Shown: piece by piece, positions 251 through 54,452 of the stretch | Position numbering within the stretch: the stretch's first letter is position 1 | How the letters are laid out: every line of letters begins with the position of its first letter | DNA from: Parasitella parasitica NRRL 2501 | Lineage: Eukaryota > Fungi > Mucoromycota | Direction: 5' to 3' | NCBI GenBank assembly: GCA_025201805.1 | Contig: MU619267.1 | Coordinates: 191,250-254,968 of the forward strand | DNA: 63,719 nucleotides | The notes under the pieces: generated by a model | What the model was told of the DNA's origin: nothing | Database searches by the model: none | Seen by the model: only the letters and a program-made list of their open reading frames with translations | Translations under genes and position numbers: made by a program

Positions 251-1719
251 TAAAGCGTGGCTCTGAGAGCATTTACCACATTGGAAGCCGAAGCGGAGGC
301 AACTGAGATTGTTATAGGTACGACAAACAATGAAAACATAACTTTCAGCCAAAATATTTCCCATTTGAACTATTCTACAAAATATCCAATTCTCAAATAT
401 CTCTGACCATGATTCGGATTTTGCGATGTTTGGACCCCAAACCTCATATTCAATTTTCAATTTTCAACTTTGGGTAAACCTTCAGGGTATTTTTAGGTAC
501 GATTTGGGTTCCAAGAAAAGTATACATCCTCATAACAGTACAACAGCTGTATCTCTACACCATACTTTCCGAATTCCAATATCTATTTTAGTTGTCGAGA
601 TACTGCCAAAGCAAGACCTTACTGATTTTATAGCAAGTTAGGTGGATAATGATTGATCAACACTTACGTCTATAAAATTCTCCAGCTGTGTATTGGAGTT
701 TTATTCAGAGTCTTTATCACCACGTTAAAGTAACACATTAGCACAACATTTTGCTGTGCGTTTTATATTGGGAAAACGGAGATGCTCTTCTAAATTATAA
801 TGGAAAAGATGTTCCCTTAAAAAAGATTATATATAATTTGTTTTGGGGAGACCAAAATTTGTTAATAAAAACCCAGCATTGTGAACCGAGTCTTCGACTT
901 GATCCCGAACTTATAAATTGACACCCATTACACATCACTACCTTTTCCCTTTTTCCCCATTTTGATAACCTCAACAAAGCTACCAACAGTTGTTCTGGTA
1001 AATTCATAACTCTAACGATTGTTGTTCATAACTAATTATATAATAAAGTTGGTTCATTTAAAACTTCAAAACTACAATCCTACTTTACACAAGACTCTTA
1101 ACCCTCAAATTAAATTACAATGCTTGCTTGTTAAACTCAATTTCAGGAACAACCCGATCTCTATATCAATAGGGGAAAAAAGCGTTTGGTATGCAATTTA
1201 CCAAAAAGGGTTCTTGTGATTACCGATATATTTTGTTGTTTTTTCTCCACTCAATCGATGAACTGAACAAATTTTAATGTGTAAAGGCACTGTTAGAAAA
1301 CTAGAGAATACTGCGTATTATTTATTAGCTGTAGAAGTATATCATCCATAATTTTTGTCCAAGCATTAAACTATGAAAAAGCAGACATGTTGGCCTAAAA
1401 ACAAAATTTCTGCTTTTCTGCTTTATCCATTATTTTTCAATGCGATTCACTTAAATCTTTGCACAGTTAGATAGAGCACCAACTCTTGTATCAATAAGCA
1501 GTATTATCCTTGGATACTAGTCATGAAATGTGCAATCAAAAAGATTTTTTTTGTCAAATTGAACGAGCCATCCAGAACAAAAAATTGCGCTTGCTTTTTT
1601 CAAAGAGTTTAAGGTGAAGCTTGTAACTACATCATACCAAGTCAGCATAGAATTATCTCTATTTTAACAGATCAGTACTAAAAGATAGATCAGAACCCTT
1701 ATATTTCGAATATAATACC
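250..1719 (-). repeat. Non-coding dispersed repeat (family A, probable non-autonomous DNA transposon), left copy
   Basis: Reverse complement aligns colinearly with 57660-60100: 435-790 with 59220-59566, 1126-1360 with 58371-58612, 1360-1500 with 57930-58080, 1620-1719 with 57660-57760. It also matches part of 61190-61760. Confidence 0.85.
839..1112 (+). mobile_element. Old, degenerate solo-LTR-like insertion in family A copy
   Basis: Segment is absent from the right-hand copy. It starts TGTTTTGGGG, ends in a decayed inverted terminus (CCTCAAATTA), is flanked by TAATT/AATT and contains TATATAATAAA. Confidence 0.4.
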
Positions 1720-2524
1720 TGTGAAATACATTGACGATAATGATCTTCATTCCACTTCTAGATTCACCCAGTTACCTTAAGCTGATATAGACTACATCAT
1801 ATGTGCATAGTTAATAAGATATAGCATACAGACTATACTATATAAGATATAGGCTAGAGATGGCACCATTAGGATGGAGGACGCTATAGACTTATATTTA
1901 TATCTTGACAGGAGTCTTAGACATTTACTAGATTTAGTGTATGCTTCGATTTTATGCCTTATAAGATCTATGCTTCGGATGCGTATTCCCAGTTTCTAAA
2001 TACGCACTACAAGACATGTACTTATATCCATGATACTAGCTACAGATACATTATTTACTACAGACTTGTACAATATGTGGAATGCTATAGATATGCTCAT
2101 GACATGTTATAGACATGCTACATATACCGATATATGCTAAGATGAATCCCAATTATACATTCAAGATATATACTGTTAATATAGACTAAATAAGACTGTA
2201 CAAGAAATGATATACACCAATGAGTTGATATTAATAACCTTCGTATAAAAGATTGATCAGGGTATCTCGGGTAAAGTCTATCTACTCATTCAGATAGATC
2301 CAAGTTGTTTTTTGTCTGCTGGGATGTCGGTAAGCACAAAGTTAAGATGCCAATTTATCAGAATTGTCGTACACATCAAGTTACGTGATTAGAACATTTA
2401 TCCATAGCTTAAGTATATAAAGGTTCATCAACCTGGCTAGTCGATTAACCAGAGCTTTATACAACTGTCTATTTGATAATAAAACCTATACCTTTACTAT
2501 ATAACGTATTATACTGATTTCACA
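1720..2524 (+). mobile_element. LTR (805 bp) without matching target-site duplication
   Basis: Perfect 8-bp inverted termini TGTGAAAT...ATTTCACA, TATATAAAA at ~2414 and AATAAA at ~2478. The first ~200 bp match 62470-62681 in reverse. Flanks ATACC and GTGAC differ. Confidence 0.65.
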
Positions 2525-2817
2525 GTGACCATTGCATTCTATGGATACAACAATATTGTTGTTTTGTTTAATATATTTTATTCTATATCATGATACTATG
2601 TACTATAGAGATAAGTACTACATACTGTCAAAAGATCTCTTTTTTCATTTATGAATGGTTAGCCTATCTGAATATAGCTTGGCTCTTATATCGACACAGA
2701 ATATCGAAGAAACTTCTGGTCACGAGATGGGTATTACAACGTGATGAAAGCGGGCAATCAATCTAACCTCATTGCATTAAGGAGCATCAACAACAACGTT
2801 TTTTCTTCTTTGTTACA

Positions 2818-4255
2818 ATGGAAAACGACTTGTTACAATCAGTGATAGAAGAACCACCTTCCAAACCAGTTAGGGCTCCTAATTACGCAAAGCAGCAAGA
2901 AAAACAAAGGGCACTGCCTATCGGATATGCTTTGAATAGTAACACCAATTTCTACGATATCCCTGCTGCAAGTAATTTGGCGATATCTTGCAAAAATTTG
3001 ACTAACAAACGGTGGTTTTTAGAGTGATGCTTTTAATGAATTGCTTGAGCGATATTTACCTTCACAAGGGAGACCCCAACGTGATGCTGTTGATTCTGAT
3101 AAACAAAAAGGGCTTGAGATAATGGTGGTAAATAATTAAATAAGGCCTGGGATATCTCAGTTGGTTTGACAGTCTGTAATAGATGAATAACATGTGGAGA
3201 TCAATAGCTAAATATGCCCGTCATCAGATTGTTCAATCTGACCCAACACAAGTAGAATCTATTCTCCATGTAAAGATAGGAAATGCAGTATACGACTTGA
3301 AAGATGGCTCTCTTAATGTTTTTTTCCTTTTCCAACTTTTAGCTTTGGTATGTTCGATTACTAGCTTTAACAAAACTAGGTCTCTGTCAGTTAGCCTCTG
3401 CCGAATTTGAAAAGATTGGAAATTTAGACAGGCTAGAGCTTTGCGACCACAATCAACAGTCTCTTGCACCATTTGAATTGCGTGTCTTGTTTGCAACGTT
3501 GCCTTCTCACCTCAAATTCCCAGTGCTTGCATTAGAGAGAATAACCATGCTGGCTGTTTATTGCAAGAAAATGCAAAAGAAATCTGCAGATGACATTTGG
3601 AAACAACGAGAAATTCAAACCTATTTGGTTTTAGCGACGCATTGGATTAACATAAAAGACTACTCGGCGGCTGCAACAACTATGCAACTCATCCTTACAA
3701 CAAAAGCGGTAGCACCTGATAATATTGATATACTGTCCAGTTTGGGTCGTTTATATCTTCAGATGGGTGATTTGAAATCTGCTCAAGATATGTTTGAACG
3801 CATGGAGCAGCAGCTCAGCAACAGTGATACAGCAAAAGAAGCCATTGATACCAACAAAGCATTTGCATTTATGGCAAAAGGAGAATGGGCCCAGGCCCGA
3901 GATATTTTACAAAGAGTGTATCAATCCAACAATGAAAATTTGCTGGCCATCAACAATCTAGCCGTATGCGAGGTTTATTTAGGGATGCTGGTCAAGGTCT
4001 ATAAAGACAATTTCTGTAAATATGCAATCCACTCATATTTTTTTTTGTTATGGTTATTAGGCAATCGAGATTCTGGAGACATTAATTTCCAATAACCCAA
4101 CATCGGCAGGAACTTGCGAAACGGCTATCATGAATTTGTGTACACTATATGAACTTCGATTTGAAGATGCTACTGTGAAAAAGGTAGAGGTGATGAAGCA
4201 GGTTGCTCGATGGGCTGGTGATTCTTTCCAAGCAGATTGCATCAAACTTCAATGA
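2818..4255 (+). CDS. TRAPPC12: TRAPP complex subunit 12 (TTC15), TPR protein; multi-exon
   Basis: Spliced product includes LWYVRLLALTKLG, PFELRVLFATLP, TPR-like helices, INNLAVCEVYLG, NLCTLYEL and GDSFQADCIKLQ*. The first intron is GC-AG (2968-3022). Confidence 0.85.
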
Positions 4256-4264
4256 TAATAAACC

Positions 4265-5663
4265 TTACTTGTTGAAACTTGAACCTCGAAGAATTCCGCA
4301 TTTTTCTTCTATCCTCTTTTTTAAATGCGACCAAAATCCCTCGAAATGTTGCTTGTTTCCTCCTGACAGCCACACAATTTGATACCAAGTGCTGGATTTC
4401 GAACGGCTGCAAGATAACTCTAATCTAAACAGAAAGGGTTCTTCGGTTGTTAATGGAATTGAATCTGTCTTTTGCAGCTTCTGCCTCTTTTTCTGACGTC
4501 TTGCTGCTCTAGACCAATTATTTCTCAACGCATTACAAGACAAGATAGTCTCTTGAGTCTTGTCTTGTTCAGTTGAATAGTCTATCTTTAAATCTTGAAG
4601 TATATCTCTTGTGCAGTCGAGCACAAAAGAGATTTCTTTGGGTAATTTGATTTCAAATTGATAAACAGGTCGCCATGTCTCAATGGCGTGTGCCTTGGTA
4701 GGGCGCTCTGCATAGAATGACCACGCTATGGCCCATCGCACAGTTTTCCCCTGAATAAAATCAGTTACAATATAGTTTGTGATGCCTTGATCATTCAATA
4801 GTCGAACTAAAGGACGGATGGTTCTTTTCAATCCAATCATGCTTGTGTACCAGTGTACCTGTTGCTGCAATTTCAGGCTTTCCATTACCATGAGCTTGAT
4901 AAATGCAAATTCACCGCCTTTAGTGATCATCTCATTGTCAGATCCAGTGCAAATTGCCGACGGCTCCAGTTCTTTGTTAAGCAACCCTTGATCTATCTCT
5001 TCCTGGCTACTGTAAAATGGCGGATTACACATGCTAAATGTATACTGTTTATCTTGTTCTAGTAAGAATATTTTGCTTGGGTCAGAGTTGTGTTTAATAG
5101 TAATCCGGTCCTCCAGATGGTTGCTCTGTACGTTTCTGTTGGCAAAGTCCACTGATCTTTGGTTGATCTCTGTGCCTAAAAAGTGCCATGTTGGATTTGT
5201 TGCGGAACCTAACAGCGGATAGATACAGGAAGCACCAACGCCACTATAGTATTGTAGGGTAGTCAATATTTACACTATCGCACAAAAGGAGCTAACCTAC
5301 ATGTCAATGCCTTGGCAGTTTTCCCGCTTAGATAAAGTGTCTTGGATCAAATCCTCGAGCCATAGAATATAGTTTAAACGATTGGGCACAGCAGGGCATA
5401 GTGTATCCAAGGGAAAATCAATGCTTATGTTGAAGTCTCTTTTCAACAAGCATTTACATAACTCCCTATTTGCCTGGGCGTCTTTAAAGTCGATGTAACT
5501 TCTACCATACTCTGTTTGTTTTACGCTTTGTTTATTTTATTTTTTATCAATAATGCTGTGTCTCTCCATCATACAAACTCACTTACAATGGATTGAATGA
5601 CGCGTAGTCTTTGGCTAGTGCGGCAAAATCAGGTTCAGTCTTGTAAATGTTTCTGGGATGCAT
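4265..5663 (-). CDS. METTL16: METTL16/PsiM-family U6 snRNA m6A methyltransferase; 3 exons
   Basis: MHPRNIY start, LCPAVPNRLNYILW, GIDIGVGASCIYPLLG, catalytic MCNPPFY, WYTSMIG and QGKTVRWAIAWSF. Confidence 0.93.
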
Positions 5664-24739: not shown

Positions 24740-27434
24740 TTACAGTTTAACTTTTCCAACATCAACTTTAGCATAGTCTTCTAAAGTAAATGGAACATAT
24801 GTATCACCATTGAGCCAGTAAACAGGATCAGTTTCAGGGATTTTACTGAGATCAATGCCTTGGTTGCGGAACTCAACCTTTTGCTGTTTGAATGTACCAG
24901 TTACCTCCATGGCAGGAACAAAGCGAATGAATACAGGGATAGCATATTTAGGCAATTTCTTACGCAAATATTGATATAGTCCTTTGAAGTCAAGAGTCGA
25001 ACCTTCCTTTAGTACAATCGCAGCCATACCGGCACGGCCGTCGTGGTTGGGAACTTGTGCGCCATAAACGTTGGCTTCGCCTATGCCAGGGTAAACACCC
25101 AAAGCTTGAGCTACTTCAGTTGTAGCTACATTCTCAGATTTCCACCGGAAAGTATCACCAACTCTATCACCAAAGTAAAAGTAACCTTCAGAGCTCAGTT
25201 TTAGCAAATCACCACTACGGAAATAACTATGAAGAAGCGGTTAGCTTTTTTGGTAATTCATATCGTGCAAAAGATAAAAGACTTACTTGTCCCCCTTCGC
25301 AAAAACGTTAGATAAGATCTTCTTTTTAGTAGCGCCTGCATTCTTGTAATATCCATCAAATGATATGGGTCCATCGGCGTCAATGCGTACAATTAATTCA
25401 CCTTGCTCACCAAATGCAGACTTCAGGATTTATGCAATACATATTAGCTTTCAAATTGGTCTCTTTTTTTTNNNNNNNNNNTTTCAGTACAAGAACATTT
25501 CTTACTTTGATGCAATTTCCGTTTCTATCTCTAAGAGGTTCTTCAGTGATAGGGTCAATTTTTATTAATTGAACTTCACTACGAAGTAAACGGAAGAGTT
25601 TACCACGGAACCCGACAGCACCTGCGCCCATCTCACCGGTATTGACATTAAATAAACTAGTTGGGGCTATGCATATAAATCTTAAGAAAAGGCCTCTTAC
25701 TAGCAACCACGAGTATTTCTTACCTTCTGTAGCAGCATAAAACTCGCAGATTTTAGGAATGTTGAATCTATCTCTGAACTTTTCCCAGACATCAGGCCTC
25801 ATGCCATTACCATAAACCAATTTAACGTTATGATTTCTTTCTTGCGGATGATGAGGTTGACTTAGTAAGTATCTACAGAATTCACCAATATACTAATATA
25901 TTTCAGTCTTTGTATTTTCATGAAAAAAAAATAGATACTATACAGTGAAGACATCAACTTTGTAATCAACACAATCATTCCAGAAACGACTTGCAGAAAA
26001 TTTACGACCCAAAACAATGGTACCACCTGCGTACAGACATACAGACGACGCTACAATTACTAGCAAATGATATCAGCCATATGTATTATCATCTTTTTTC
26101 TTTCTTTTGATATTCTTACGTCCAGAACTATGGTACAATGGTAATACACAATAGACTCTTTGGTCTTTTTGAACACCTGTTGTATTTGAATACATCACCA
26201 TGGCAACTGAACAAAAAATTCAGGGGTAAGATTTTAGTTGCTATGGAGGACTGAATTACTTACAATTGACACGAGCATGTTGAGTTATAGCAGCCTGTAC
26301 AAATGTAATGAGTTATTTGAACTGATTTGTACAAAAAAAAAGTATGTTGATTATACCTTTGGCATGCCAGTAGTGCCGCTGTAGAGTTCAATTGCATGGT
26401 GAGTTATTTTTAAATTAAACACAAATCTTGTGGCCTTCTTACCTGGTATATATTAAATAAGCTGGATCATTAGCCGGAGCGCCTTTGATATGCTCGTCAC
26501 TAGTATCCTTATCAGAAAAACGGCCCAAGATGCTTGGATTAAGAGTCAGCGCGTTTGCCAAAGGAGTCAATTCAGCTTCTTGAGTATGTTCACCGTATGC
26601 AACTAGCCTGACATTGAGTTCCTTGGTAGCTTCAGCAATAGTGTTCACTTGTGATTCATAAATAGAGTCGAATATGAAGAGCTTTGTATTTGCAATTTTA
26701 ATACAATGCAAAAGAGAGTCATCAGACAAGTTGGTGTTAATCAATGAAGGAACCGCACCGATTTTACTGATGGCAAACAAAGTAATAAAGAAAGTAGGGT
26801 GGTTTTGATGCATCATGCAAACGATATCTGGCGTACGAATCACATGAGCACATGAAAATTTACCCCTGGATAAATTAATGCTTACCGTTTCTCTTGATAT
26901 TTTGAGCAAGTAACCAATAAGCCTTATAAAGTATGTGTCAATGCATATGTTCAATTTTTGTATGCAGTTAATCTTACCAATCTGTTTGATGCTAAATTAG
27001 GCAGGATTAATATGAATAATATTATATTCTACGCTTTTGGTGTAACTTACCTTTTTCAATCTGACGAAATGTGTATTCTCTTCCTTCAAATAGAAGGAAA
27101 ATTTTATTGGGATTAGCCTTTGCCTTCTCTTTGAATCGGTAGTAAAAGTGAAGTTTATCTTGAAATTCCCAAGTCTTGTGCCTGAATTATGTTTTTAGAG
27201 ACAAAAACTTGATGTTGATTGACTTTTTTTTTAGAAGACTTACGAAATTGTAGCAACTGCTCCTGCCCTTAATTGATGAAGATCTTTGCCGAGCAGTAAT
27301 TTGGCATCAAGATACATGCTGCCTAGCAAACCACTTATACCTGCTGCAACTACTGGAAGAATATCTATGTGTGTACAATTTTTTCAGCCAAGATATTTTC
27401 TTTTTTAGTATATCTTTACTTTACCGAGACTCAT
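24740..27434 (-). CDS. FAT1: Very-long-chain acyl-CoA synthetase / fatty acid transport protein; many exons; spans an N-gap
   Basis: YLIYT(SGTTG)MPK AMP-binding motif, LPLYHSSG, YGNGMRPDVW, EFYAATE, FATP signature DRVGDTFRWKSENV and a PTS1-like VKL end. Confidence 0.92.
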
Positions 27435-27728: not shown

Positions 27729-29409
27729 TTATTGGCATGAAACAACAGAAGCAGCAGCAAATTGATTTTTATGATAATTTTCGTTAATCCATTCAGTCAT
27801 CTTTTTCAAGAGCAGTAAATGAGTTACTTTTGCTGTCGATCTTACTGTGGTTGTCGTTGTGGTGGCTGTAGTAGGATATAATGATTTGGATTCATATTCC
27901 TTTTCAATGACAGATTCAGAACTAATATCATCATCCTTCAAAGAGAGTTTAGACAGATCGCTAGTGATCAAATCGCGAATCAGATCATCTGTTGATTTCT
28001 CTTTTTCTTTCTCTTTCTCTTTCTCTATTTCTTCTGCTTTCTCGGGAGAGGCAGCAGGCTTGAAATTATTATCAGTCATTGCACTAGAGAATGTATTAAT
28101 AAGCGTAGCCATGTTCTTCTTGTCTTCATGCGTAATTGGTTTTGAAGGCTTGAAAGACTCAGTTTCTTTTTTCTCAGTTTCTGCATTTTCCGGAAGGTTC
28201 GCTTTGGTGAAATTTGTTGTTGTACGAAGCTCAGGCTGGAAATATTGATTGGCCATATTTGGGATTGTCGTGTAATGCTGTCTTTGGCCTGTAACTCCCA
28301 CGTTATGTTGTTGATATGGTTGATATAGGTTGGTAGACAAAGGTAAACCAAGATAGCTCTCTATGTTCTGGCTTGGTACGACAGGCTGCGGCATTGGTTG
28401 AGATCGAACATACATGTCATTTTCTTCACATGGAACAGGGTACATGTTGTTGCTATTATGAGATGGTACAACGGTTGGATACTGTTGCTGTTGCATATCG
28501 AAATTGGAAATCTGGTTATATGCAAACGATGTTGCAGGGTCCATTACAGGTTCCTGTGGTAATTGCCCCGTAGTAATGCTATCAGAAAGACGGGCCAGCC
28601 ATTCATTCATGTCATTCAGTTGCTGCTCGTTGCTAATACTCAAGTTGAAGTTTGATTGGTTGATGGTTCCTGCGTCCATAAAATTTTGAATCTGGTCAAG
28701 GCTATGGGCAATGGAAGAGTTATACTCGATTGGCTTTGAGTCCATATCCATAGGAAAGAACAAATCATTAATGATGTCTGCAGGTGGTTGTGTAACAGAA
28801 GTAGGTTGTGGAACTTGATTGTTGTAATGCTGTTGATGTGTGGATGATAAATCAGACATTGCAGTAGAAGGAGAGACCCCAGCATACATCCAATTATCGT
28901 CCGAGTAAGTGCTTGTCGGAGGAGAAATGGGATGATCGTTGGATAGTACAGGCGATACATCTCGGCTTGAGTGATGGGTGGAGCTTGGTGGCGTTAATGG
29001 CTGCTGATTTCTGTGATGACAACGCAAACTTGAAATGTGCTGCTCACTGTGGATCTTTTCATGCTTCTTTAAATCTTGTGGACGCTTGAATGATTTGCTA
29101 CAAAACTATTCGCTGCATTAGTATGTAATAACATGCATATACAGAAAAAAATTGATTATTCCATACTTGGCATCGATGTGGTTTTAAGGGTACATGAACT
29201 CGGAGATGACTAGTGATGTGATCTCTTTTGATCACAGTTACATCACATTTCTCCCAATGACAAGTAAGGCAGAGATTTCCAGTCGATTTTCTACCAACAT
29301 GGTCATTTGTTAAATGAATATAAAGATGCTCAGGATCATCAAATGAGATTGCACAGCCAATCCAACGGCAAAAGTAAATTTCTGTGTCCATTTCTAGAGA
29401 ATTTTGCAT
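27729..29409 (-). CDS. pacC: PacC/Rim101 pH-response C2H2 transcription factor; 2 exons
   Basis: Three fingers: CRWIGC...[44 protein letters not shown] and [20 protein letters not shown] sites at 29542 and 29622 in its own promoter. Confidence 0.95.
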
Positions 29410-29736
29410 AAATAGAACAAAAATTGAGGAAAGAAGAAAGCCCAACAAAAAGGAAAAGATTAAATAAACAGAGAAAAAAAGGAGACACCAAAAGGAAGGG
29501 GTTCTTGAGATGGAAAAAAAAAAAGGGCGTATGATTAATATCTTGGCAAAACTTGAAAGTGTACAAATAAGAGACCACATTTCTCTTCTTTGCATTGAAA
29601 CGCAGCCATTTGAACTTGGTTGCCAAGCAACTGATGAAATGGGTCTAAACGCAAATACCAGAAAGAAGTACAAAAATTATATTTGTATTGATATTCATTT
29701 AGAATAAAAACCTTGCCGAGTCCATTCAATAAACAA

Positions 29737-31423
29737 CTAAAAAAGTTAGCATCGCTAGTTATCAACCCAACTCTTCTTTTAAAGAAGGCAGACGAAAGAG
29801 TGTGGAATTGACTGATTTTAATGAGTGAGAATTGTGGTAAATAAAAAATACGCGAGTCCAAAGAGACTATTGCCAATGATGATAATGAATCCCGTGATTT
29901 GTCGCCGTTCCATTCTTTACAGGTATACAAACAGGATTAAGACAGAGCAACGAGCCTTTAAACTGATCGGTGTTGCTGTTGTCTTGGATGTACTAACCTT
30001 GTATTAACCAAAGATACAAGTTTTTGATGTTTTGCGTTCGTTGGTGATACAAATATTAATACTTCCAACCACCTCCCACCGCATCTTCTAAATTCTTTTA
30101 TCGAAGATCCAACGCCGGTCCCTCTGTCACCCTCAAACTGAATCAGCTGCTTGTTATCTATTAAACTTTCGTAGGATTACTGAGTTACTTTGATAAGTTT
30201 CGCATGCACGGCATATAGTTCTTGGATACTTGGGCACTTGTCAAGTGATGTAATTGACCTCACTTGACAGGACATTGTCAGCCAGCATTGCTTTTTTCCG
30301 CTTCTTTTATTTCCTCTTCCATTGTAGTTCTTACCTTTTTATATCCGCAACCGAAATCAATATCAGTAAATTTTATAACATACTTTTTAGATAAGTCCAA
30401 AAAGTCATATTGTTTCTTGCTGATTTCAATATTTTCATTTTGTAGGACGTGATGCTTGTTATAAAGCTCTATGTGAAATGCAAACCTTTCCTTTAAGAAA
30501 GGTACAGTCGTAGACATATTCGCGAGACCATTGTCTGTACCGGAAAACTCGAAAAGGGATAGATCTTCAATGCTACATTTTAATGTCTTGAGTATACCAA
30601 ACGTGTTAACTGGTAAAGTGGACGAGGTGCTTGTCCTATGGTAGACGGTATCGTTGTCTTTAAGAGTTTATTCTAAATCATAATCATCCACCTTTTCAGG
30701 TGCTAAATGCAATCGTAATGAATAAATTAACTGCAGAAGTTGATCCGTAAACGACAAGTTTATATCTTTTTTATAAGCCGCTTTTACATTAGCAGAGAGA
30801 AGTGTTGCAGAAAATGATGGCTTCAACTTATTCTCTTTGACATTAATATCTGGATTATATCAAATGTAGTTCCTTCTTGCATGTTCAGTGGGCCGTTCTC
30901 AATGAAGAATGCGTTATTCTTGAATGTGATAATCAACATTTGCAAAATAGTTAAGAATTGGCCTGGAAATCACTAGAATCAATGATTGCCTGCTTTAGTT
31001 TGCTATTGACAACCTTTTTAATATTTGTTGAAAGATCCTTTCTCCAAATCTTATTGATAGAGACTGAGCAAGTAAGATGGACTAGTTGATTTTAGTAAGC
31101 ATCGGATATTAACGGTACAGGAACGTCTGCTTGTTCAGACGTAGCATTTCTTGCTAGCTTGGTTTCTTTCTGTATAGTTCCAGGCGGTCAACGTTTTTTT
31201 TTTCAGTGAATCTTGTTTAAATTTTTTCAATTCGACTTTCATAGCCGTACTGCTACATGTATCAATCTTGCTTTTGATGAATGAACGAACAGTGATACTT
31301 ATAGATTGGTTGAAGGAAGGCAAATACTTAGATTCATGATTACTACTAGGCCTTTTATGTATTTTTTTCCTGAGCGTTTTCAAGTTCTAGCGGAAGGATT
31401 AAATCGCCAACATAGCTGGGCAT
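29737..31423 (-). pseudogene. Degenerate Fanzor1 (TnpB-like RuvC RNA-guided endonuclease) gene of a decayed DNA transposon
   Basis: Ordered motifs across frameshifts and stops: CSVSINKIWRKDL, FSGTDNGLANMSTTVP (RuvC-I D at 30533-35), GDRGTGVGSSIKEFRRCGGRW (30131-30069), CITNERKTSKTC (RuvC-II E at 30037-39), KGSLLCLNPVC (Zn ribbon), SRDSLSSLAI (RuvC-III D at 29889-91). TATAAAAG at ~31460 and ATG at 31423. Confidence 0.85.
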
Positions 31424-31499
31424 TTTTGCTCTCGTTTACGATTACACATTGCATACTTTTATATTTCAAAGATAAAAAGTACACTTCATCATTTTAGTA

Positions 31500-34300
31500 T
31501 AAATGAATAGCTTACTTCTTAAAAAATGCTTTAAAGGTTGTTCTTTGTTCTTTGTATACTAAGAAAACCTAGGAAAAACGGGAAAAAAAAATGTATAATA
31601 TCAACTTTACATATTATTAAATATAATTTCTGTCCATTAATATATTTGGTGAGAAGCCGAGATTAAAGAGTAAAATTTAGGACTATACCGTAGCTATATG
31701 ATTGAAATCAATTATCATTTAAATTATTTTTCCCTGCTGAATATCTGAGGGTAACAGGGAATGGTCTTAGTCATAAGTATTCACGCAATCATAAATGTCA
31801 AAATGAAACCAATCGATATAAGATAGTGTTTAAATTATGTATCTTATCAGCTCTTTATAATTAAACATTACAATCGGTTATGAAGTTCAATACTTTTATC
31901 ATGCTGATTTTTGCACATGTTTTTATTTACATTTTCTTTATTGTTTCCGAAAAAAAAGTTCAAGTAGATGATAAATGTCACGGTGTTTGTGATAATATAT
32001 ATGAGTTTCTGGTAACAAACCTTTTATTTCTGGTAAAAGCTGAGAAGTTTCTGAGAGAAGCGAAATGTCTCCCTAAAAATACTTTAAATAGGAACTAAAA
32101 GTATTAAATACACTCACATTTTTTAGATATTAGAAATGCCCAAGAATAGAGAACATTTATTTTATCTTTGATCAAACAGCCATTTTCCAGGAGCAATAGA
32201 CTATTTGGGTTTTTTATTATTCTATTTTTCAATGCAGTGAGATTTTTTATCAACACTATCGACATGTACATCAGAATCTGGAACTGAACAATCATCATCG
32301 GGCCACAATACAAAATTGCTTGAATTCCATAATGTTTAAATGTTGATAAATTATTTCAGATATATCCGTTAGAAATTAGACATACGAATATGCTCAAATA
32401 TTCAGTCATGCCTATAGAACTGCTTACGTATTTAAACTAAAAAATGGTTTGATTACAAAACCGTCAAAGTATCAAACTTCATTTACACCATGGCTTTTGA
32501 ATCTAAATTTAAACCAACTATTTCATTCTGTTTTCTCCTTTAATTATATGCCTTTTCAAAAATCATAGCATATTCAAGCAAATGACAATCTCTATATTTA
32601 AAACTTTACATTATCATTTTATGTTACATCTGATGAGTAAGTCAGCATATCCAATATCAAAAAAAGAATATACAATCTGGATTCGTTAAAACAGACGGGT
32701 TGGTGTACAAAACTGTGTTCGATATAGCGAGTTATCCCCTATATTAAGAATTTGATACTCTATAGTACAGTGCCTGGAACCTTGAATCTACCAGAAGCTT
32801 ATTATGAAGCTTAGCTTTTGTTAGTAAAATTACTCTCAACCTCAATCCTAACCTCTATTCTAATTTCTATTTTACATGCTTAGCATTAGAATCACAAAAG
32901 AAGGAAATCTTGAGCTGACGTTAAGTATTATTATAAACAACAATGGTAATAGGGCTTCTCTGTCACTAGCAATTAGCAACTTGTGAATTATTCACAAATA
33001 ACAAGGGGTCATTACAGCAAAACATTGTATTCATTAATTATTCTCTTCTACTTCCAACTCAATGAGCCACACCTTTTTTATCATATTACTTTAAAGAAAA
33101 AGGTATACTTGTGGCATTAAAATTACTCACTTTATAGAGTTGTATTATGTACTAGAATTGAAATTGACGTGATATCGTCTCCAGATAGATATTTCTTACA
33201 GCTTAGAAGCAAACACTTGAGCTTCCTGTGCCATTTTTTGATTAATTTTGATACTCAAAAGTGCCCTGAAAACACTGGAAATAGTATCCGTTGGGGAAAA
33301 GCTATATTATATATGAATTTGGTGCAATTTCAGCATGATTTTTTTTTCGATGCAAAATGACGGATTTTTTTTAATTTTTTCCTTGTATCCACCCATTCAA
33401 AATCATTGATTATGCATTATTCTCAATTTTCGACCCAAAAATGCAACTTTTTACTATGGGATATATTGGAGGAAAATGATGGCAAAAGACCATTCCATGA
33501 TCTGAAAGACTGGAAATGCGCTTTGATTAAGCAAAATATTGATTTTTCCCTGTTAATTTGTTTTGACGTTTTTTTTGTAGAACTCTTTCCATAAGCATAC
33601 GGGAATTGTGAAAGTATATCACCGTGTAGAGCGCCTAAAAATACAGCTATTATCATAAACTGACAGCCGTGATATGCATAGTATCAGAGGATGATATCTT
33701 GCCTAAAAGGAGTAATTTTGTTTTTAAATGTCCAAATGGAATTTTTGAAAGAAGTTTTCCTTCCTGGTTTTGGACACGTTTAATCTCCGCTATAAAAGAA
33801 AAATAGTGTTTTTTTTGACGAAAGCATTAGCTTTGAGAAGCCATGGTTTACCCAATTCAAGAAAAAACAATTGCAACCTAAATTAATTAAATAATGTGCT
33901 TCTTGGCTTTCTAGAGGTAGTACTCAAATGTTTGTTCCTTGCCTGACGATCTCACGCTCCAATTTTGAAAAATACTTTTTCGAAAAAAGTTAGAAAAGTC
34001 GCCACCTTCATCTGATGTCAACTTCAAAAGTACAAAAACTTGCTCTAAGATGTGCAAATATGTAATCAAAAGATGCCTTATAGTTTAATTCATTAATTTT
34101 TATTACTTTGCATTCCTTTTTTTTGTGTTTGAAATCGCTAAACCTTGTTTTCTTACAGTTTTTGTCTTTTTTTCTGACAATAATACACTGAAGTTCGTGT
34201 AGGCCCCTAGAATCTACGCTGGCTTTACAAAGACACATACTTTTGACCCACTCCAATATTATATTTTTCAGAAAAAATGGTAAAGATTTGACTAGCTGTT
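31500..34300. repeat. AT-rich region without recognisable genes; probable nested non-autonomous transposon debris
   Basis: No plausible protein, composition similar to the flanking repeat zones, and adjacent to the Fanzor relic. Individual element boundaries are not resolved. Confidence 0.4.
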
Positions 34301-36595: not shown

Positions 36596-37626
36596 NNNNN
36601 NNNNNAAATTGTTGACGGAAAGCGATTTGTTTTAGAGAACACCAGTAGTCTGAGACTAAAGAAATGTCTTGTTTAATCCAATTTTCCTCATTTACTTTTG
36701 CAGAATATAGACTTTCAAGCTAAAATTGCTTTAAATTTTGGGTGTGCTAATTCTTTACAAGTTGCAGCATTAGATTCAACATTAAAAATTAATTTCTGAA
36801 GCACATCAAATATTTTTAATAAATTCTTGCGACATAAAGGAAGCGATGATGGTGGTTGAATCATCAAAAGCAGCAGCAGACATTATTATACGAGAGAGAC
36901 AATACACATGAACTAAATCTTCTGTAGGTCAACTAGACACATAGACATATGTTCACTATATACTTGCTTTTAACTCTTGAGCAAGAACAGAATTCTTTTA
37001 TACCATGAGATGATTCAATGAATAGACTTTTAAACGCATGAACAGTGCTAATCAATGACTCTGGTTCCTGATAATTCAAATGCTAACTTCTAGTTTGTAA
37101 GAAGACCAGCCTTTATTCTACAAAATATAAGTATTAACTCAATAACATTATCGACAACAGAAATATTGATAGGTATTGTCACAAATGACTGTAGTTACAC
37201 GATAAGACTGTAAATAAAGACCATTTTTTCTCAGTTACCATAGTATCTTGATTAGGTTGATAGATACTCCCTAAATAGCCTTCTTGTATACTTATTTCAT
37301 TGCATGGCAAGTATATGGTGTATGTATGAGGTGTCAGCTCTTTCTACATGTACATCTAGTTTATAGATGAATCGTAGGGTTAAACTACCGAATGAATGTT
37401 ATAGGTTTATCTCTATATTTGAGATGAAAATAATGACTTATCGTTTATAACCAATCATACGAATGCATTTCTATATGTCAGAACTGGTAAACGACTCATA
37501 GGCCTTTCTATTTGACATAAAGTTTTGCATTTTAATTCATAATCCCGTCTTTTCTTCTTCTTCTTTTACAAACAAGATCCGAAATCACTCCCTACTCTCT
37601 TCTCTTCTTCTTGCAACTCAATCATA

Positions 37627-40393: not shown

Positions 40394-41297
40394 ATGGTAG
40401 GCAAGATCATCAGTTTCAGAATATGGAAAAAAAAGAAAAGCCGCTGACCTATTTCTACCAGAATGTCCGAGAGTATCAGCATAAAATTCTTGTTGTAGGA
40501 GACCTGGGTACTGGGAAAACATCGATTTTAAAGAGATATATACACAATGCATTTTCCAGCAATTACAAATCAACGGTATTTATATTGATATTATGGTCTC
40601 CATTCTAGGAATATCCTTCTAAAACCAGTTTGTTTTTGACAGATTGGAGTTGACTTTGCATTAAAAGTCATTCAGATCGATCCACACACAGTCGTAAACT
40701 TGCAAATGTGGGACATAGCTGGCCAGGAGCGATTTGGAAGTATGACCCGAGCATACTATAAAGGCGCTATGGGCGCATTTATTGTCTATGATGTGACAAG
40801 ACCAATCACCTTCCAAAATGCTTTAAAATGGAAGCAGGACTTAGACTCCAAAGTGGAGCTTCCTTTAGGCTGGGGAGGGGGCGATATACCTGTGGTTTTA
40901 CTGGCAAACAAAGTATACAAGGGACATACATCTATACGGCATTGTCACGTCTAACTCTGTAATACACATATATAGATTGATCAACGACACAACCCCAAAT
41001 CAAAAGAAGAGATGCAAGGCTTTTGCGCCCAACATAAGTTTATCCGCTGGTACTACAAGTCTGTAATTAATAAAACAAACTGTAATACTAACATATTGGC
41101 TTGATAGGTTTGATACATCAGCAAAGGAAAATACAAGTATAGAAGCCGCCGTTGAATACCTCATAAATCACATTGTACAACTAGAACTGTCAAAGCAGAC
41201 TGACAGTGATTACGAGATTGACTACAGTAGCAGTAGTAGTAGCGAATTCTCTCTTTATGATGATCGGCCAAATTTGCGCAATTCAAGCTGCTGTTAA
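40394..41297 (+). CDS. RAB32: Rab32/38-family small GTPase; first exon is the ATG only
   Basis: GDLGTGKTS, IGVDFALKV, the Rab32-type WDIAGQE, ANKID, TSAK and a C-terminal SSCC prenylation motif. Confidence 0.88.
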
Positions 41298-45663: not shown

Positions 45664-47996
45664 TTATTGTGAAGCAATGAAATGGCTGGCGTCATACATC
45701 ATGGCAAACCAAGGATGAGGGAATCGATCATAGTAATCAATGTCGAACTTACCGCCGTTCAACAAGTTGATTGTGCCTGCAACCAGCGGAGATGTCAAAT
45801 CTTCGCGTGGCACCTGGTGGCCCTGCGTAAACTTTATAGTATCTAATTCATTTAGACAAGACTTCATCATTGATCGAGCTTCCTTTGCAATACGCTTGTT
45901 TGGCGATAAAGCTAATAGCACGAGAACATCTAAAGCATGGAATAGGAACTCACTAGCAGACAGAATGTAGTTGCCTGCATNNNNNNNNNNNNNNNNNNNN
46001 NNNNNAAAAAAAAAAAAAAAAAAAAAAAGGAGAAAAGAATACACTTACATGAGTTTGGGTTAGCCACTGCAAGTCTGTGGATCGCATGAAGTAACAATTT
46101 GCAACTCTCTAGCGCTTTGGTTAACGAATGCTCTTGCACCCGGGATAGTAAATCTTGGCCGTAATCAGACAAGGATTTAGGTTGTAATAAACAAGAATAG
46201 GTGCTGACATGGAATACGTGAAATTGTATAAAATTCGTCAACAGTATGGAATCGGTAACTTGATCTATCGCTTTGTAACATTTCTCCCAATCATATAGAT
46301 CATCGCAGAGTCGAAATTCTGCAGGCATAGCTGATGCCCACTCGCGCATTACGTCTTCGATCCTGATGATAGATTCAAAACTAAGCGTACATGTTCTACC
46401 CACATGGACACGATGAATTTGGCCCTGTGAAAGTCAGTGTTAATAAGAGAATACAGGCAGAGCAAACAGCGGAAGCTTTACCATGAAATTCCTCACAAAC
46501 TCATGATTATACAAGTTGATTACCCAATTCTGTGATCGAACGAATCGCTTTGTTTCGTCGGGCTCGTCCTCCATGTATTTCCAAGTTGGAAAATGGAAGC
46601 AGTTGTTGTCTGAAAAGTCATTTGCAATGAAATCCATTAGTTTGCTTGTGGACATGGAAAGAGTAATATGCCGGGTAAACAGCATTTTGTCGACATCGGT
46701 AATTGGGTCTTCTTGTTTTGTATAGGTATAATGCCCCATGTGCGACGAGCCCTCAAAGCAATCGTGATATTTAGGCCCTTGGAATTCAGGGTAATCATGC
46801 CGCAGATCAAGCAAAATCTGATAAGCCATCGAGACTAATTGTCGACATTCCGCGTATTTAAGAGTTACATGCATGTACTGAATTTGTAAGTTGATCCCAA
46901 TTACGTTTTCTAATCGTTTCTCGGGTTCGTCGAATTGATCCATAATGATGTTTCTAGCTTTAGCATGAAAAAAGTCGCCCATGTTTCGTCGCTCTCGAGG
47001 AGAAAACCCCAGATGCTTACAGGGAGTTGAGCACACATAGGAACAAATGCCTAGTGTGATCAGATCTGTCAGTGGGTCTTCAATAGTGGCCAATTTCTGT
47101 CGATAGGATGGCTCATGCACCAGAGGGTTATTTATATTGTGGCATTTGAAATAAATGTTCAGCAGCTGGTCTACAAGTGATTGCGGATCCAGTAATAATG
47201 TACTCGGCAGGAGGAGAGATGACGGTGAGCTGGAGGGATTTGTGTTTATACATCTTGTCAAAACCTTGATCGTGAATGGAATGAGACTTCCGGTGCCTTC
47301 TTTTCCAAAGCTTATAATGATTCCAGCGTCGTTTCCTCTGTAGAAAGAATCGTTAAAAAAAGAGCCATCGTCACTGTCGCTGTTGTTTGACGACGCTGAA
47401 AACGAGGATGACGATGACCATGTCGTTGATCTTTCTCGATGACCACCCAACGGGGATAAATAGGTTATCGAAGGGTCGAACTGTAGCAATTCACTTATAT
47501 TACGTATGCCTGTCTCTATTTGAAAACTGCCATTTTCAATCTTGAACTTCCAGTTGTGAAATAAACTTTGAATCATTGTATTTGACAGTTCTGACAAGTG
47601 TTGGCTGCTGCCGCTTGTGATCGACAATTCGTTATTGCTGGTGTTGTTGTATCTGGAAAGGCTTGCATTATGGCTGCTGCGGCGTACCTGCAACTGCCGC
47701 TCCATGAAAGACACGGCCTCTTCAAGCTGTCTCACTTGATCCTTCAAGTTATTGATATCCTGATCTCCTTTCAGTTGCTCACACTCATACTGTTCATCTG
47801 GCTGCTCTTCTTGCTGTGCTGGCTGCTGGCAAACCTTGCCAAGTCTCTCGCACCTGGAGCATTTAGATATCAAATTGGGGTGTACACATTTTCGACGATG
47901 CTTTCTACATTCTAAATCAATCATTTCATTACACAAAATATCAATGCAATGTAGAATGAGTTTATTACCAGTGCAAGGAGTGTTCCTGACTTTCAT
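45664..47996 (-). CDS. Zn(II)2Cys6 fungal transcription factor with fungal-specific TF domain; multi-exon
   Basis: After removing intron 47968-47912: CTECRKHRRKC-x7-CSRCERLGKVC, then a coiled coil and the YFKCHNINNPLVH middle-domain motif. Confidence 0.88.
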
Positions 47997-54442: not shown

Positions 54443-54452
54443 NNNNNNNNNN

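Follow-up and report, generated by a model that had tools for sequence, protein, structure and literature searches.

Fanzor proteins, relatives of the TnpB nucleases, were defined by Bao and Jurka in 2013 (PMC3627910), who gave the Fanzor1/TnpB layout as D-X(125,275)-[TS][TS]-X-X-[C4 zinc finger]-X(5,50)-RD. The protein supplement to that paper includes ROr-4 from Rhizopus oryzae, PBl-3 from Phycomyces blakesleeanus, and MCi-4 and MCi-5 from Mucor circinelloides, which are full-length consensus proteins of 1165–1245 amino acids (aa) on defined elements of 4.5–7.3 kb; elements of the ROr-4/PBl-3/MCi-4 type are described there as non-autonomous and 4.5–5.2 kb long, with MuDR-like terminal inverted repeats (TIRs) of 31–42 bp and 9-bp target-site duplications (TSDs). 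One Mucorales Fanzor, PpFz1 of Parasitella parasitica, has been solved (PDB 9CF0–9CF3; PMC11423790). Full-text searches on Fanzor in Mucorales, Rhizopus or Mucor gave the 2013 paper, the 2024 structure paper and an unrelated giant-virus preprint, but no biochemical study of the long Mucorales Fanzor1 clade, and these proteins of ~1,200 aa seem to be biochemically undescribed. Here we describe a locus of this clade in a 63,719-nucleotide stretch of Parasitella parasitica NRRL 2501 (GCA_025201805.1, contig MU619267.1, positions 191,250 to 254,968; hereafter the window), where an initial annotation, made from the letters alone, had proposed a fragmented Fanzor1 gene. We are confident that window positions 29733–31073 on the minus strand are what is left of a Fanzor1 gene from this long clade, now a pseudogene that encodes no nuclease. 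The family has been known from Mucor-type fungi since 2013, and a dead copy of it is an ordinary find but a real one.

The minus strand of window 29500–31700 was translated in three frames and the stop-free pieces were searched separately. All five motif strings on which the initial annotation relied were recovered in the order and at the places where it had read them: FSGTDNGL with the RuvC-I aspartate (30547–30524), GDRGTGVGSSIKEFRRCGG (30131–30075), ITNERKTSKTC with the RuvC-II glutamate, the TS pair and the first zinc cysteine (30048–30016), CLNPVC (29944–29927) and SRDSLSSLAI of RuvC-III (29897–29868). The order D..E/TS-C..C..RD is therefore kept, with the frames alternating and many stops between the pieces, and the agreement goes well past what chance would give. 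The published layout is also respected in spacing, though with the motifs in different frames: the RuvC-I aspartate (30535–30533) lies ~168 codons ahead of the TS pair (~30030), and the RD (29894) ~11 codons past CLNPVC.

Six-frame translation of the 63.7-kb window gave 2714 pieces, all of which were compared with a hidden Markov model of the family (HMM A1, from 22 Mucorales homologues). The model matched four collinear pieces, every one within the relic (Table 1), and nothing comparable outside it, the best other piece among the 2714 having an E-value of 0.32. When family proteins were compared with the window, ~190 tblastn high-scoring segment pairs (HSPs; E<0.01) were obtained, the strongest of them at the relic, and those with E<0.001 within 29000–31500 place the protein-level homology at 29733–31073.

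That this family is Fanzor1 was established from its other members. The C-terminal open reading frame (ORF) of L041, a locus of the same genome considered below, recruited 407 proteins from 1.84 billion representative proteins at E<=0.001; those with a named source come from Mucor, Rhizopus, Lichtheimia and Halteromyces, where they are labelled 'hypothetical' or left unnamed. Full-length members (450–1081 aa) carry F/Y-S-G-T-D-N/Y-G, then E-x-x-T/S-S-x-x-C some 200–260 residues on and RD ~50 residues past that, all in one frame. Against the PDB, the sole significant match of A1 was SpuFz1 of Spizellomyces punctatus (8GKH, 9CEU–9CEZ; E 4.4e-8 over 238 positions), the next matches being non-significant ones to Cas12f. 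The alignment pairs RuvC-II (E-x-x-TS-x-x-C), both zinc-ribbon halves (the second as C.NP.C) and the RD of RuvC-III, at ~16–17% identity between SpuFz1 and the family; the Mucorales clade differs in being far longer N-terminally and in having its own GDRGTGVGSRIKG insertion. The relic is linked to SpuFz1 transitively, its pieces matching A1 and A1 matching SpuFz1.

An AlphaFold2 model of one family member, P0036, was built from an 86-sequence alignment (mean predicted local distance difference test score, pLDDT, 75.7; mostly >90 in the RuvC half). Foldseek against the PDB placed SpuFz first (E 7e-6, probability 1.00), followed in order by Cas12o, Cas12f, PpFz, GtFz, mimivirus Fanzor2 and ISDra2 TnpB, and no fold other than Fanzor/Cas12/TnpB occurred among the best 50 ranks. 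A RuvC plus zinc-ribbon (TNB) fold is thus predicted for P0036, as a relative, rather than for the broken relic. Template modelling scores between SpuFz1 and the model are only ~0.3, so that the domains are either differently placed or badly modelled. PpFz1, TnpB and Cas12f share the same RuvC and TNB core (Foldseek E 6e-4 to 3e-2). PpFz1 was not among the A1 matches in the PDB at E<=10, and the clade is therefore a Fanzor1 lineage distinct from it.

The same blocks occur in the named proteins. As far as the supplement's text gives them, ROr-4, PBl-3, MCi-4 and MCi-5 share with the relic, and in the same order, F.GTDNG.., (D/E)IDFGCG, FIGDRGTGVGSRIKG.(K/R)RYGG.W, (I/V)TNE..TS.TC.FCF, C.NP.C and SRD.LSALAIG, as well as an N-terminal TC..(S/Q)INK...DL motif, and come from the same fungal order (PMC3627910). 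ROr-4, for example, reads ..FCGTDNGLVNMTAAVPFSLKRFSFHLKLHNYY..EIDFGCGAFKQRV..FIGDRGTGVGSRIKGFKRYGGRWKEV..NVCVTNENLTSKTCIFCF..CTNPLCVSV..KSRDSLSALAIG; its version of the LIQFEGDRGTGVGSSIKEFRRCGGRW block, the clade's signature beta-strand and loop preceding RuvC-II, is FIGDRGTGVGSRIKGFKRYGGRW. In the same text, ROr-4 and PBl-3 both have the motif of N-terminal remnant 1 (..TCTASINKLIREDL..) and likewise the block of the zinc-ribbon second half. Unlike these consensus proteins, the window copy is frameshifted, deleted and without recognisable ends. Profile, structure and literature evidence agree, and the family is hence tied to Fanzor1, as the initial annotation had supposed. It had further suggested that the family's intact members, omegaRNA and TAM may be uncharacterised. 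The family is not new: the clade was described from Rhizopus, Phycomyces and Mucor in 2013 (PMC3627910). Neither an omegaRNA nor a TAM is addressed by anything at this locus.

Several observations weigh against this identification. The RuvC-III piece by itself is non-significant against A1 (E 5.6), and Pfam returned noise only, such as PerC and Tag1_N, for ten stop-free pieces of the relic. Single family proteins searched with phmmer against the PDB found nothing; only the profile succeeded. Some full-length relatives have no Pfam domain; in others PF07282 appears towards the C-terminus, where it belongs, but with scores (E 7e-4 to 1.6e-2; 15.8–20.1 bits) under its threshold of 26.3 bits. The likeness to ROr-4, to PBl-3 and to MCi-4 was read from motif blocks in the supplement text. 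Finally, because neither a TIR nor a 9-bp TSD was found, the assignment to a MuDR-like carrier is drawn solely from the protein clade. The locus nevertheless fits the sequence definition of Fanzor1 by its layout, by profile and fold through its family, and by blocks near-identical with those of named Fanzor1 proteins. The main relevance is to annotation, as the PF07282 scores below cut-off mean that this clade escapes Pfam and that its relics, even long copies, go unlabelled.

The closest database protein is CAO3636577.1 of Mucor hiemalis (P0055, 937 aa; gene L043:6001-9292; GCA_977110905.1), which carries only the annotation 'unnamed protein product'. It is collinear with the relic through the N-terminal motif region, RuvC-I, the GDRGTGVG block, RuvC-II and RuvC-III, at 36–67% identity per block (Table 1). 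Upstream of 31073 there is no similarity to any relative; at the other end, protein homology can be followed to near 29733, and on contig C112 a sibling copy remains similar in DNA as far as 29802. The P0055 gene model ends ..MCVNLNVLQSS.. where the family has C.NP.C, and the RD block lies in another L043 frame; judging by its sequence, the Mucor hiemalis copy may be frameshifted or mis-modelled at its C-terminus.

Table 1. Remnants of the Fanzor1 gene in the window, in coding order, with matches to the family profile A1 and to the Mucor hiemalis relative
Feature	Window positions	Strand	A1 positions	A1 E-value	Match to P0055 or its locus (L043) and remarks
N-terminal remnant 1 (TCSVSINKIWRKDLSTNIKKVV...)	30966..31073	-			P0055 aa 106-141, by tblastn and by tblastx against L043; tblastn 53% identity, summed E 8e-12 over three HSPs
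N-terminal remnant 2	30844..30969	-			P0055 aa ~142-182; frame differs from remnant 1; HSP extends to 30984, its start crossing three stop codons
N-terminal remnant 3	30719..30853	-			P0055 aa 183-227; third frame
Deletion junction	30605..30718	-			114 bp in place of P0055 aa 228-623
Longest stop-free piece (129 codons): FSGTDNGL, then helix and insertion (FHIELYNK.., DIDFGCGYKKVR)	30281..30667	-	94-190	1.9e-19	RuvC-I piece, window 30604-30305: 41% identity to P0055 aa 624-723, E 3e-17
LIQFEGDRGTGVGSSIKEFRRCGGRW block	30057..30176 (profile piece 29961-30176)	-	269-299	1.7e-9	Other frame, stop ahead; window 30152-30057: 63% identity to P0055 aa 830-861
RuvC-II Glu, TS and first zinc-ribbon Cys (NICITNERKTSKTCIFG)	30007..30087	-	299-322	7.9e-6	Window 30057-30010 matches P0055 aa 867-882
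Zinc-ribbon second half (GSLLCLNPVCIPVKNGTAT)	29870..29992	-	340-366	2.4e-4	Yet another frame
RuvC-III (KSRDSLSSLAI, 29897-29868) and decayed C-terminal tail	29733..29936	-			RD block 29924-29868 aligned to L043 by tblastx, 63% identity

The recognisable coding remnant of the window copy amounts to ~1.34 kb and is heavily decayed. There are six frame changes, and no fewer than four of them interrupt blocks that are contiguous in relatives. In the Mucor hiemalis gene the three N-terminal blocks stand in one frame, as do the blocks from RuvC-I to RuvC-II, and the frame changes in the window are therefore real insertions or deletions. The tblastx blocks on either side of the junction (30719 to 30553) are 166 nt apart in the window and 1721 nt apart in L043, so that ~1.55 kb is missing just before RuvC-I, which bears out the internal deletion suspected there; P0055 keeps a middle region of ~400 aa (REC-like, coiled-coil) that the window copy lacks. 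A second shortfall, of ~55 codons, lies ahead of the GDRGTGVG block and RuvC-II. Directly after TSKTCIFG, where relatives read TC.FCF, a TAA at 30004–30006 puts a stop inside the zinc ribbon: the first CxxC pair has become C-I-F-G and then the stop, its second cysteine lost, and CLNPVC alone is left. The relic thus has neither the intact C4 zinc ribbon of PF07282 and the Cas12f1-like TNB domain nor, given the six frame changes, several in-frame stops, the ~1.55-kb deletion and the ~55-codon shortfall, a single ORF. It follows from the deletion, the frame changes and the zinc-ribbon stop that this copy encodes no nuclease and can neither move nor cut, and it was rightly called dead in the initial annotation. 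A working copy would have an open frame, a zinc ribbon that is intact and ends that can be recognised, and the relic has none of these. Homology to SpuFz1 suggests that its ancestor encoded a TnpB-type, omegaRNA-guided nuclease with a split RuvC (D, E, D) and a CxxC..Cx4C zinc ribbon.

The next gene downstream of the relic, which shares its strand, encodes a C2H2 zinc-finger protein (27729–29391, minus strand; ATG at 29391) and has a 61-nt GT..AG intron at 29166–29106, removal of which joins the zinc-finger exons in frame. In this gene Pfam sees nothing beyond C2H2 fingers; from its finger sequence we take it to be PacC/Rim101-like, and call it pacC below. Transcription was assessed from a single RNA-like public run (X7). 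A high-depth X7 contig of 2139 nt covers 30366–29167, skips 29166–29106 exactly and continues from 29105 past 28800. Since a canonical in-frame intron has been removed exactly, this contig is RNA-derived. It is collinear and unspliced over 29167–30366, that is, over the 3' half of the relic (from DIDFGCGYK to its end) and the pacC leader, and hence no splicing restores the relic's frame within that interval. A second X7 contig, of low depth, covers 30446–30746, and there is none over 30774–31600. On the simplest reading, inert remains of a transposon are included in a pacC 5' leader that is 975 nt or longer, or in read-through RNA, and the locus offers a modest case of a master regulator with transposon DNA in its leader; contigs of this kind cannot show a transcript start or a single molecule. 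The gene start proposed in the initial annotation, with its ATG at 31423 and a TATA box, found no support: the ORF there has 22 codons, lies upstream of 31073 where similarity to relatives ends, and falls in the stretch for which X7 has no contig, and TATA-like strings are common in AT-rich DNA.

Three other explanations of the locus were weighed. That the motifs were assembled by chance in AT-rich DNA, or belong to an unrelated host protein, might be argued from pieces that are short, were stitched by eye and are blank in Pfam; four collinear profile matches with E-values down to 1.9e-19, with nothing comparable elsewhere in the window, and the concentration of the strongest tblastn HSPs at this place leave this the least credible account, with next to nothing to recommend it. 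The sole look-alike in the window, at 40486–40539 on the plus strand, was considered as a second relic and rejected, being the P-loop of a Rab-type GTPase (KILVVGDLGTGKTS; E>0.04). Scarcely more credible is a live, intron-rich gene in which the frame changes are introns and a shortened Fanzor-like protein is made. The locus is partly transcribed, as such a gene would be, but the shifts at GGRW/RWEV (~30075–30060) and KNGTAT/KSRD (~29900) each take place within a few bases and therefore leave no room for an intron; the TAA interrupts TC.FCF; the corresponding Mucor hiemalis blocks are in one frame; and the X7 contig runs unspliced over 29167–30366.

The remaining alternative, that the relic has been co-opted and its 3' half now works for pacC, be it as a promoter, as the region where transcription starts or as a regulatory 5' leader, is compatible with the relic being a dead Fanzor1, and we regard it as unlikely. 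It draws on the shared strand and on the spliced, high-depth contig that begins within the relic at 30366 and extends past the ATG of pacC (29391) and across the intron; but that contig comes from one RNA-like run and shows neither a transcript start nor a single molecule, the predicted structure of the leader is unremarkable (z -1.17) and has no Rfam match, and relics of transposable elements in leaders are common and usually neutral. Marginally less likely again is the particular version in which the 3' half, possibly with remains of an omegaRNA end, was domesticated as the start region or long regulatory leader of pacC/RIM101; if true, an ancient RNA-guided-nuclease transposon would be shaping expression of the fungus's central pH-response regulator. 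We prefer a dead relic, the 3' half of which would most likely now be passive sequence in a long pacC 5' leader.

The ends of the element have probably been eroded. The best inverted pair bracketing the relic (29692–29709 / 31492–31509, 16/18 complementary) belongs to a class found at chance level (2 observed, with shuffled sequence giving 1.0 +/- 0.9), no 9-bp repeat is common to its two flanks, and no clear TIR surrounds the Mucor hiemalis copy. The whole window has no Rfam match, and the 371 nt after the RD motif (29500–29870) fold no better than shuffles (the z of -1.17 given above). Downstream of the coding remnant there is no DNA similarity to the C112 sibling (beyond 29802) or to the Mucor hiemalis locus, and no omegaRNA model for the long Mucorales clade exists for comparison in searches of the 3' end.

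The genome itself (32.8 Mb, 450 contigs) holds many other Fanzor1 copies, some of them young. At the DNA level the relic has one sibling only, L042, at the start of contig C112 (572–1220, plus strand; 76–77% identity over ~570 bp), which is equally degenerate and full of stops (DIDFGCGYK.., ..ERNIPQTCIF.., CINPACISVKNG) and therefore cannot define the element's ends. L042 lies ~1.7 kb from a Pus10-like gene (2906–3865, minus strand; Pfam E 2e-83). At the protein level the RuvC-I piece matches ~15 further places. In one of these, L041 (C233:5000-12500; copy at 355–4687), the RuvC half consists of two clean ORFs lying side by side, 296 and 292 codons long (2839–3726 and 3773–4648), which read ..AVFSGTDNGIIKT.. 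and ..FVGDRGHGFGSRIKGHRRFGG..TKEHNTSQTC..CLNPEC..CRDQVSALAIG; the relic's motif set therefore recurs in a readable gene. L041 was considered as an intact paralogue, which is unproven, its N-terminal half being split into small ORFs. A six-frame search of the genome with its C-terminal ORF gave 125 matches. Many of them reach 76–92% identity; the relic is a distant one (35% identity, E 1.8e-3).

Pfam PF07282 gave 79 six-frame matches in the genome, ~36 of them above cut-off and several carrying stops. The places read (L004–L015; contigs C77, C122, C33, C2, C169, C84, C39 and C70 among them) are classic Fanzor1 of other lineages, with the readings DEYLTSQVCNNC...WNRDIMAAKNI and DEFRTSKACSKC...WQRDINASRNM, and the genome holds at least three Fanzor1 lineages. 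As the initial annotation had held, the relic belongs to a Fanzor family present in this genome. 'Open frames' of 500–1400 codons beside many copies were rejected as artefacts of N runs. N runs lie next to those Fanzor copies that are longest and probably least damaged (for example C64:48132-49536, C45:14419-17183, C52, C55, C40 and C25).

A young, multi-copy Fanzor1-like family at 90–94% DNA identity comprises L041, L019, L023, L026, L027, L028, L030 and L039. No 5' TIR was found in the loci examined; four copies share a common 3' terminus ~180 nt past the stop (...GGAATTTAGCTTGATATACNGTTACAGTAT), with unrelated flanks, and L041 is without the final ~140 nt of this 3' end.

Short N runs of 10–25 bases, which are gaps or masked spots, occur in the window at 25472–25481, 36596–36605, 45981–46005 and 54443–54452, none of them within the relic. 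An intron-containing gene at window 40400–40900 (plus strand) encodes a small GTPase of Rab type (KILVVGDLGTGKTSILKRY.., ..WDIAGQERF..), the P-loop of which is the source of spurious weak matches to the Fanzor GDRGTGVGS block.

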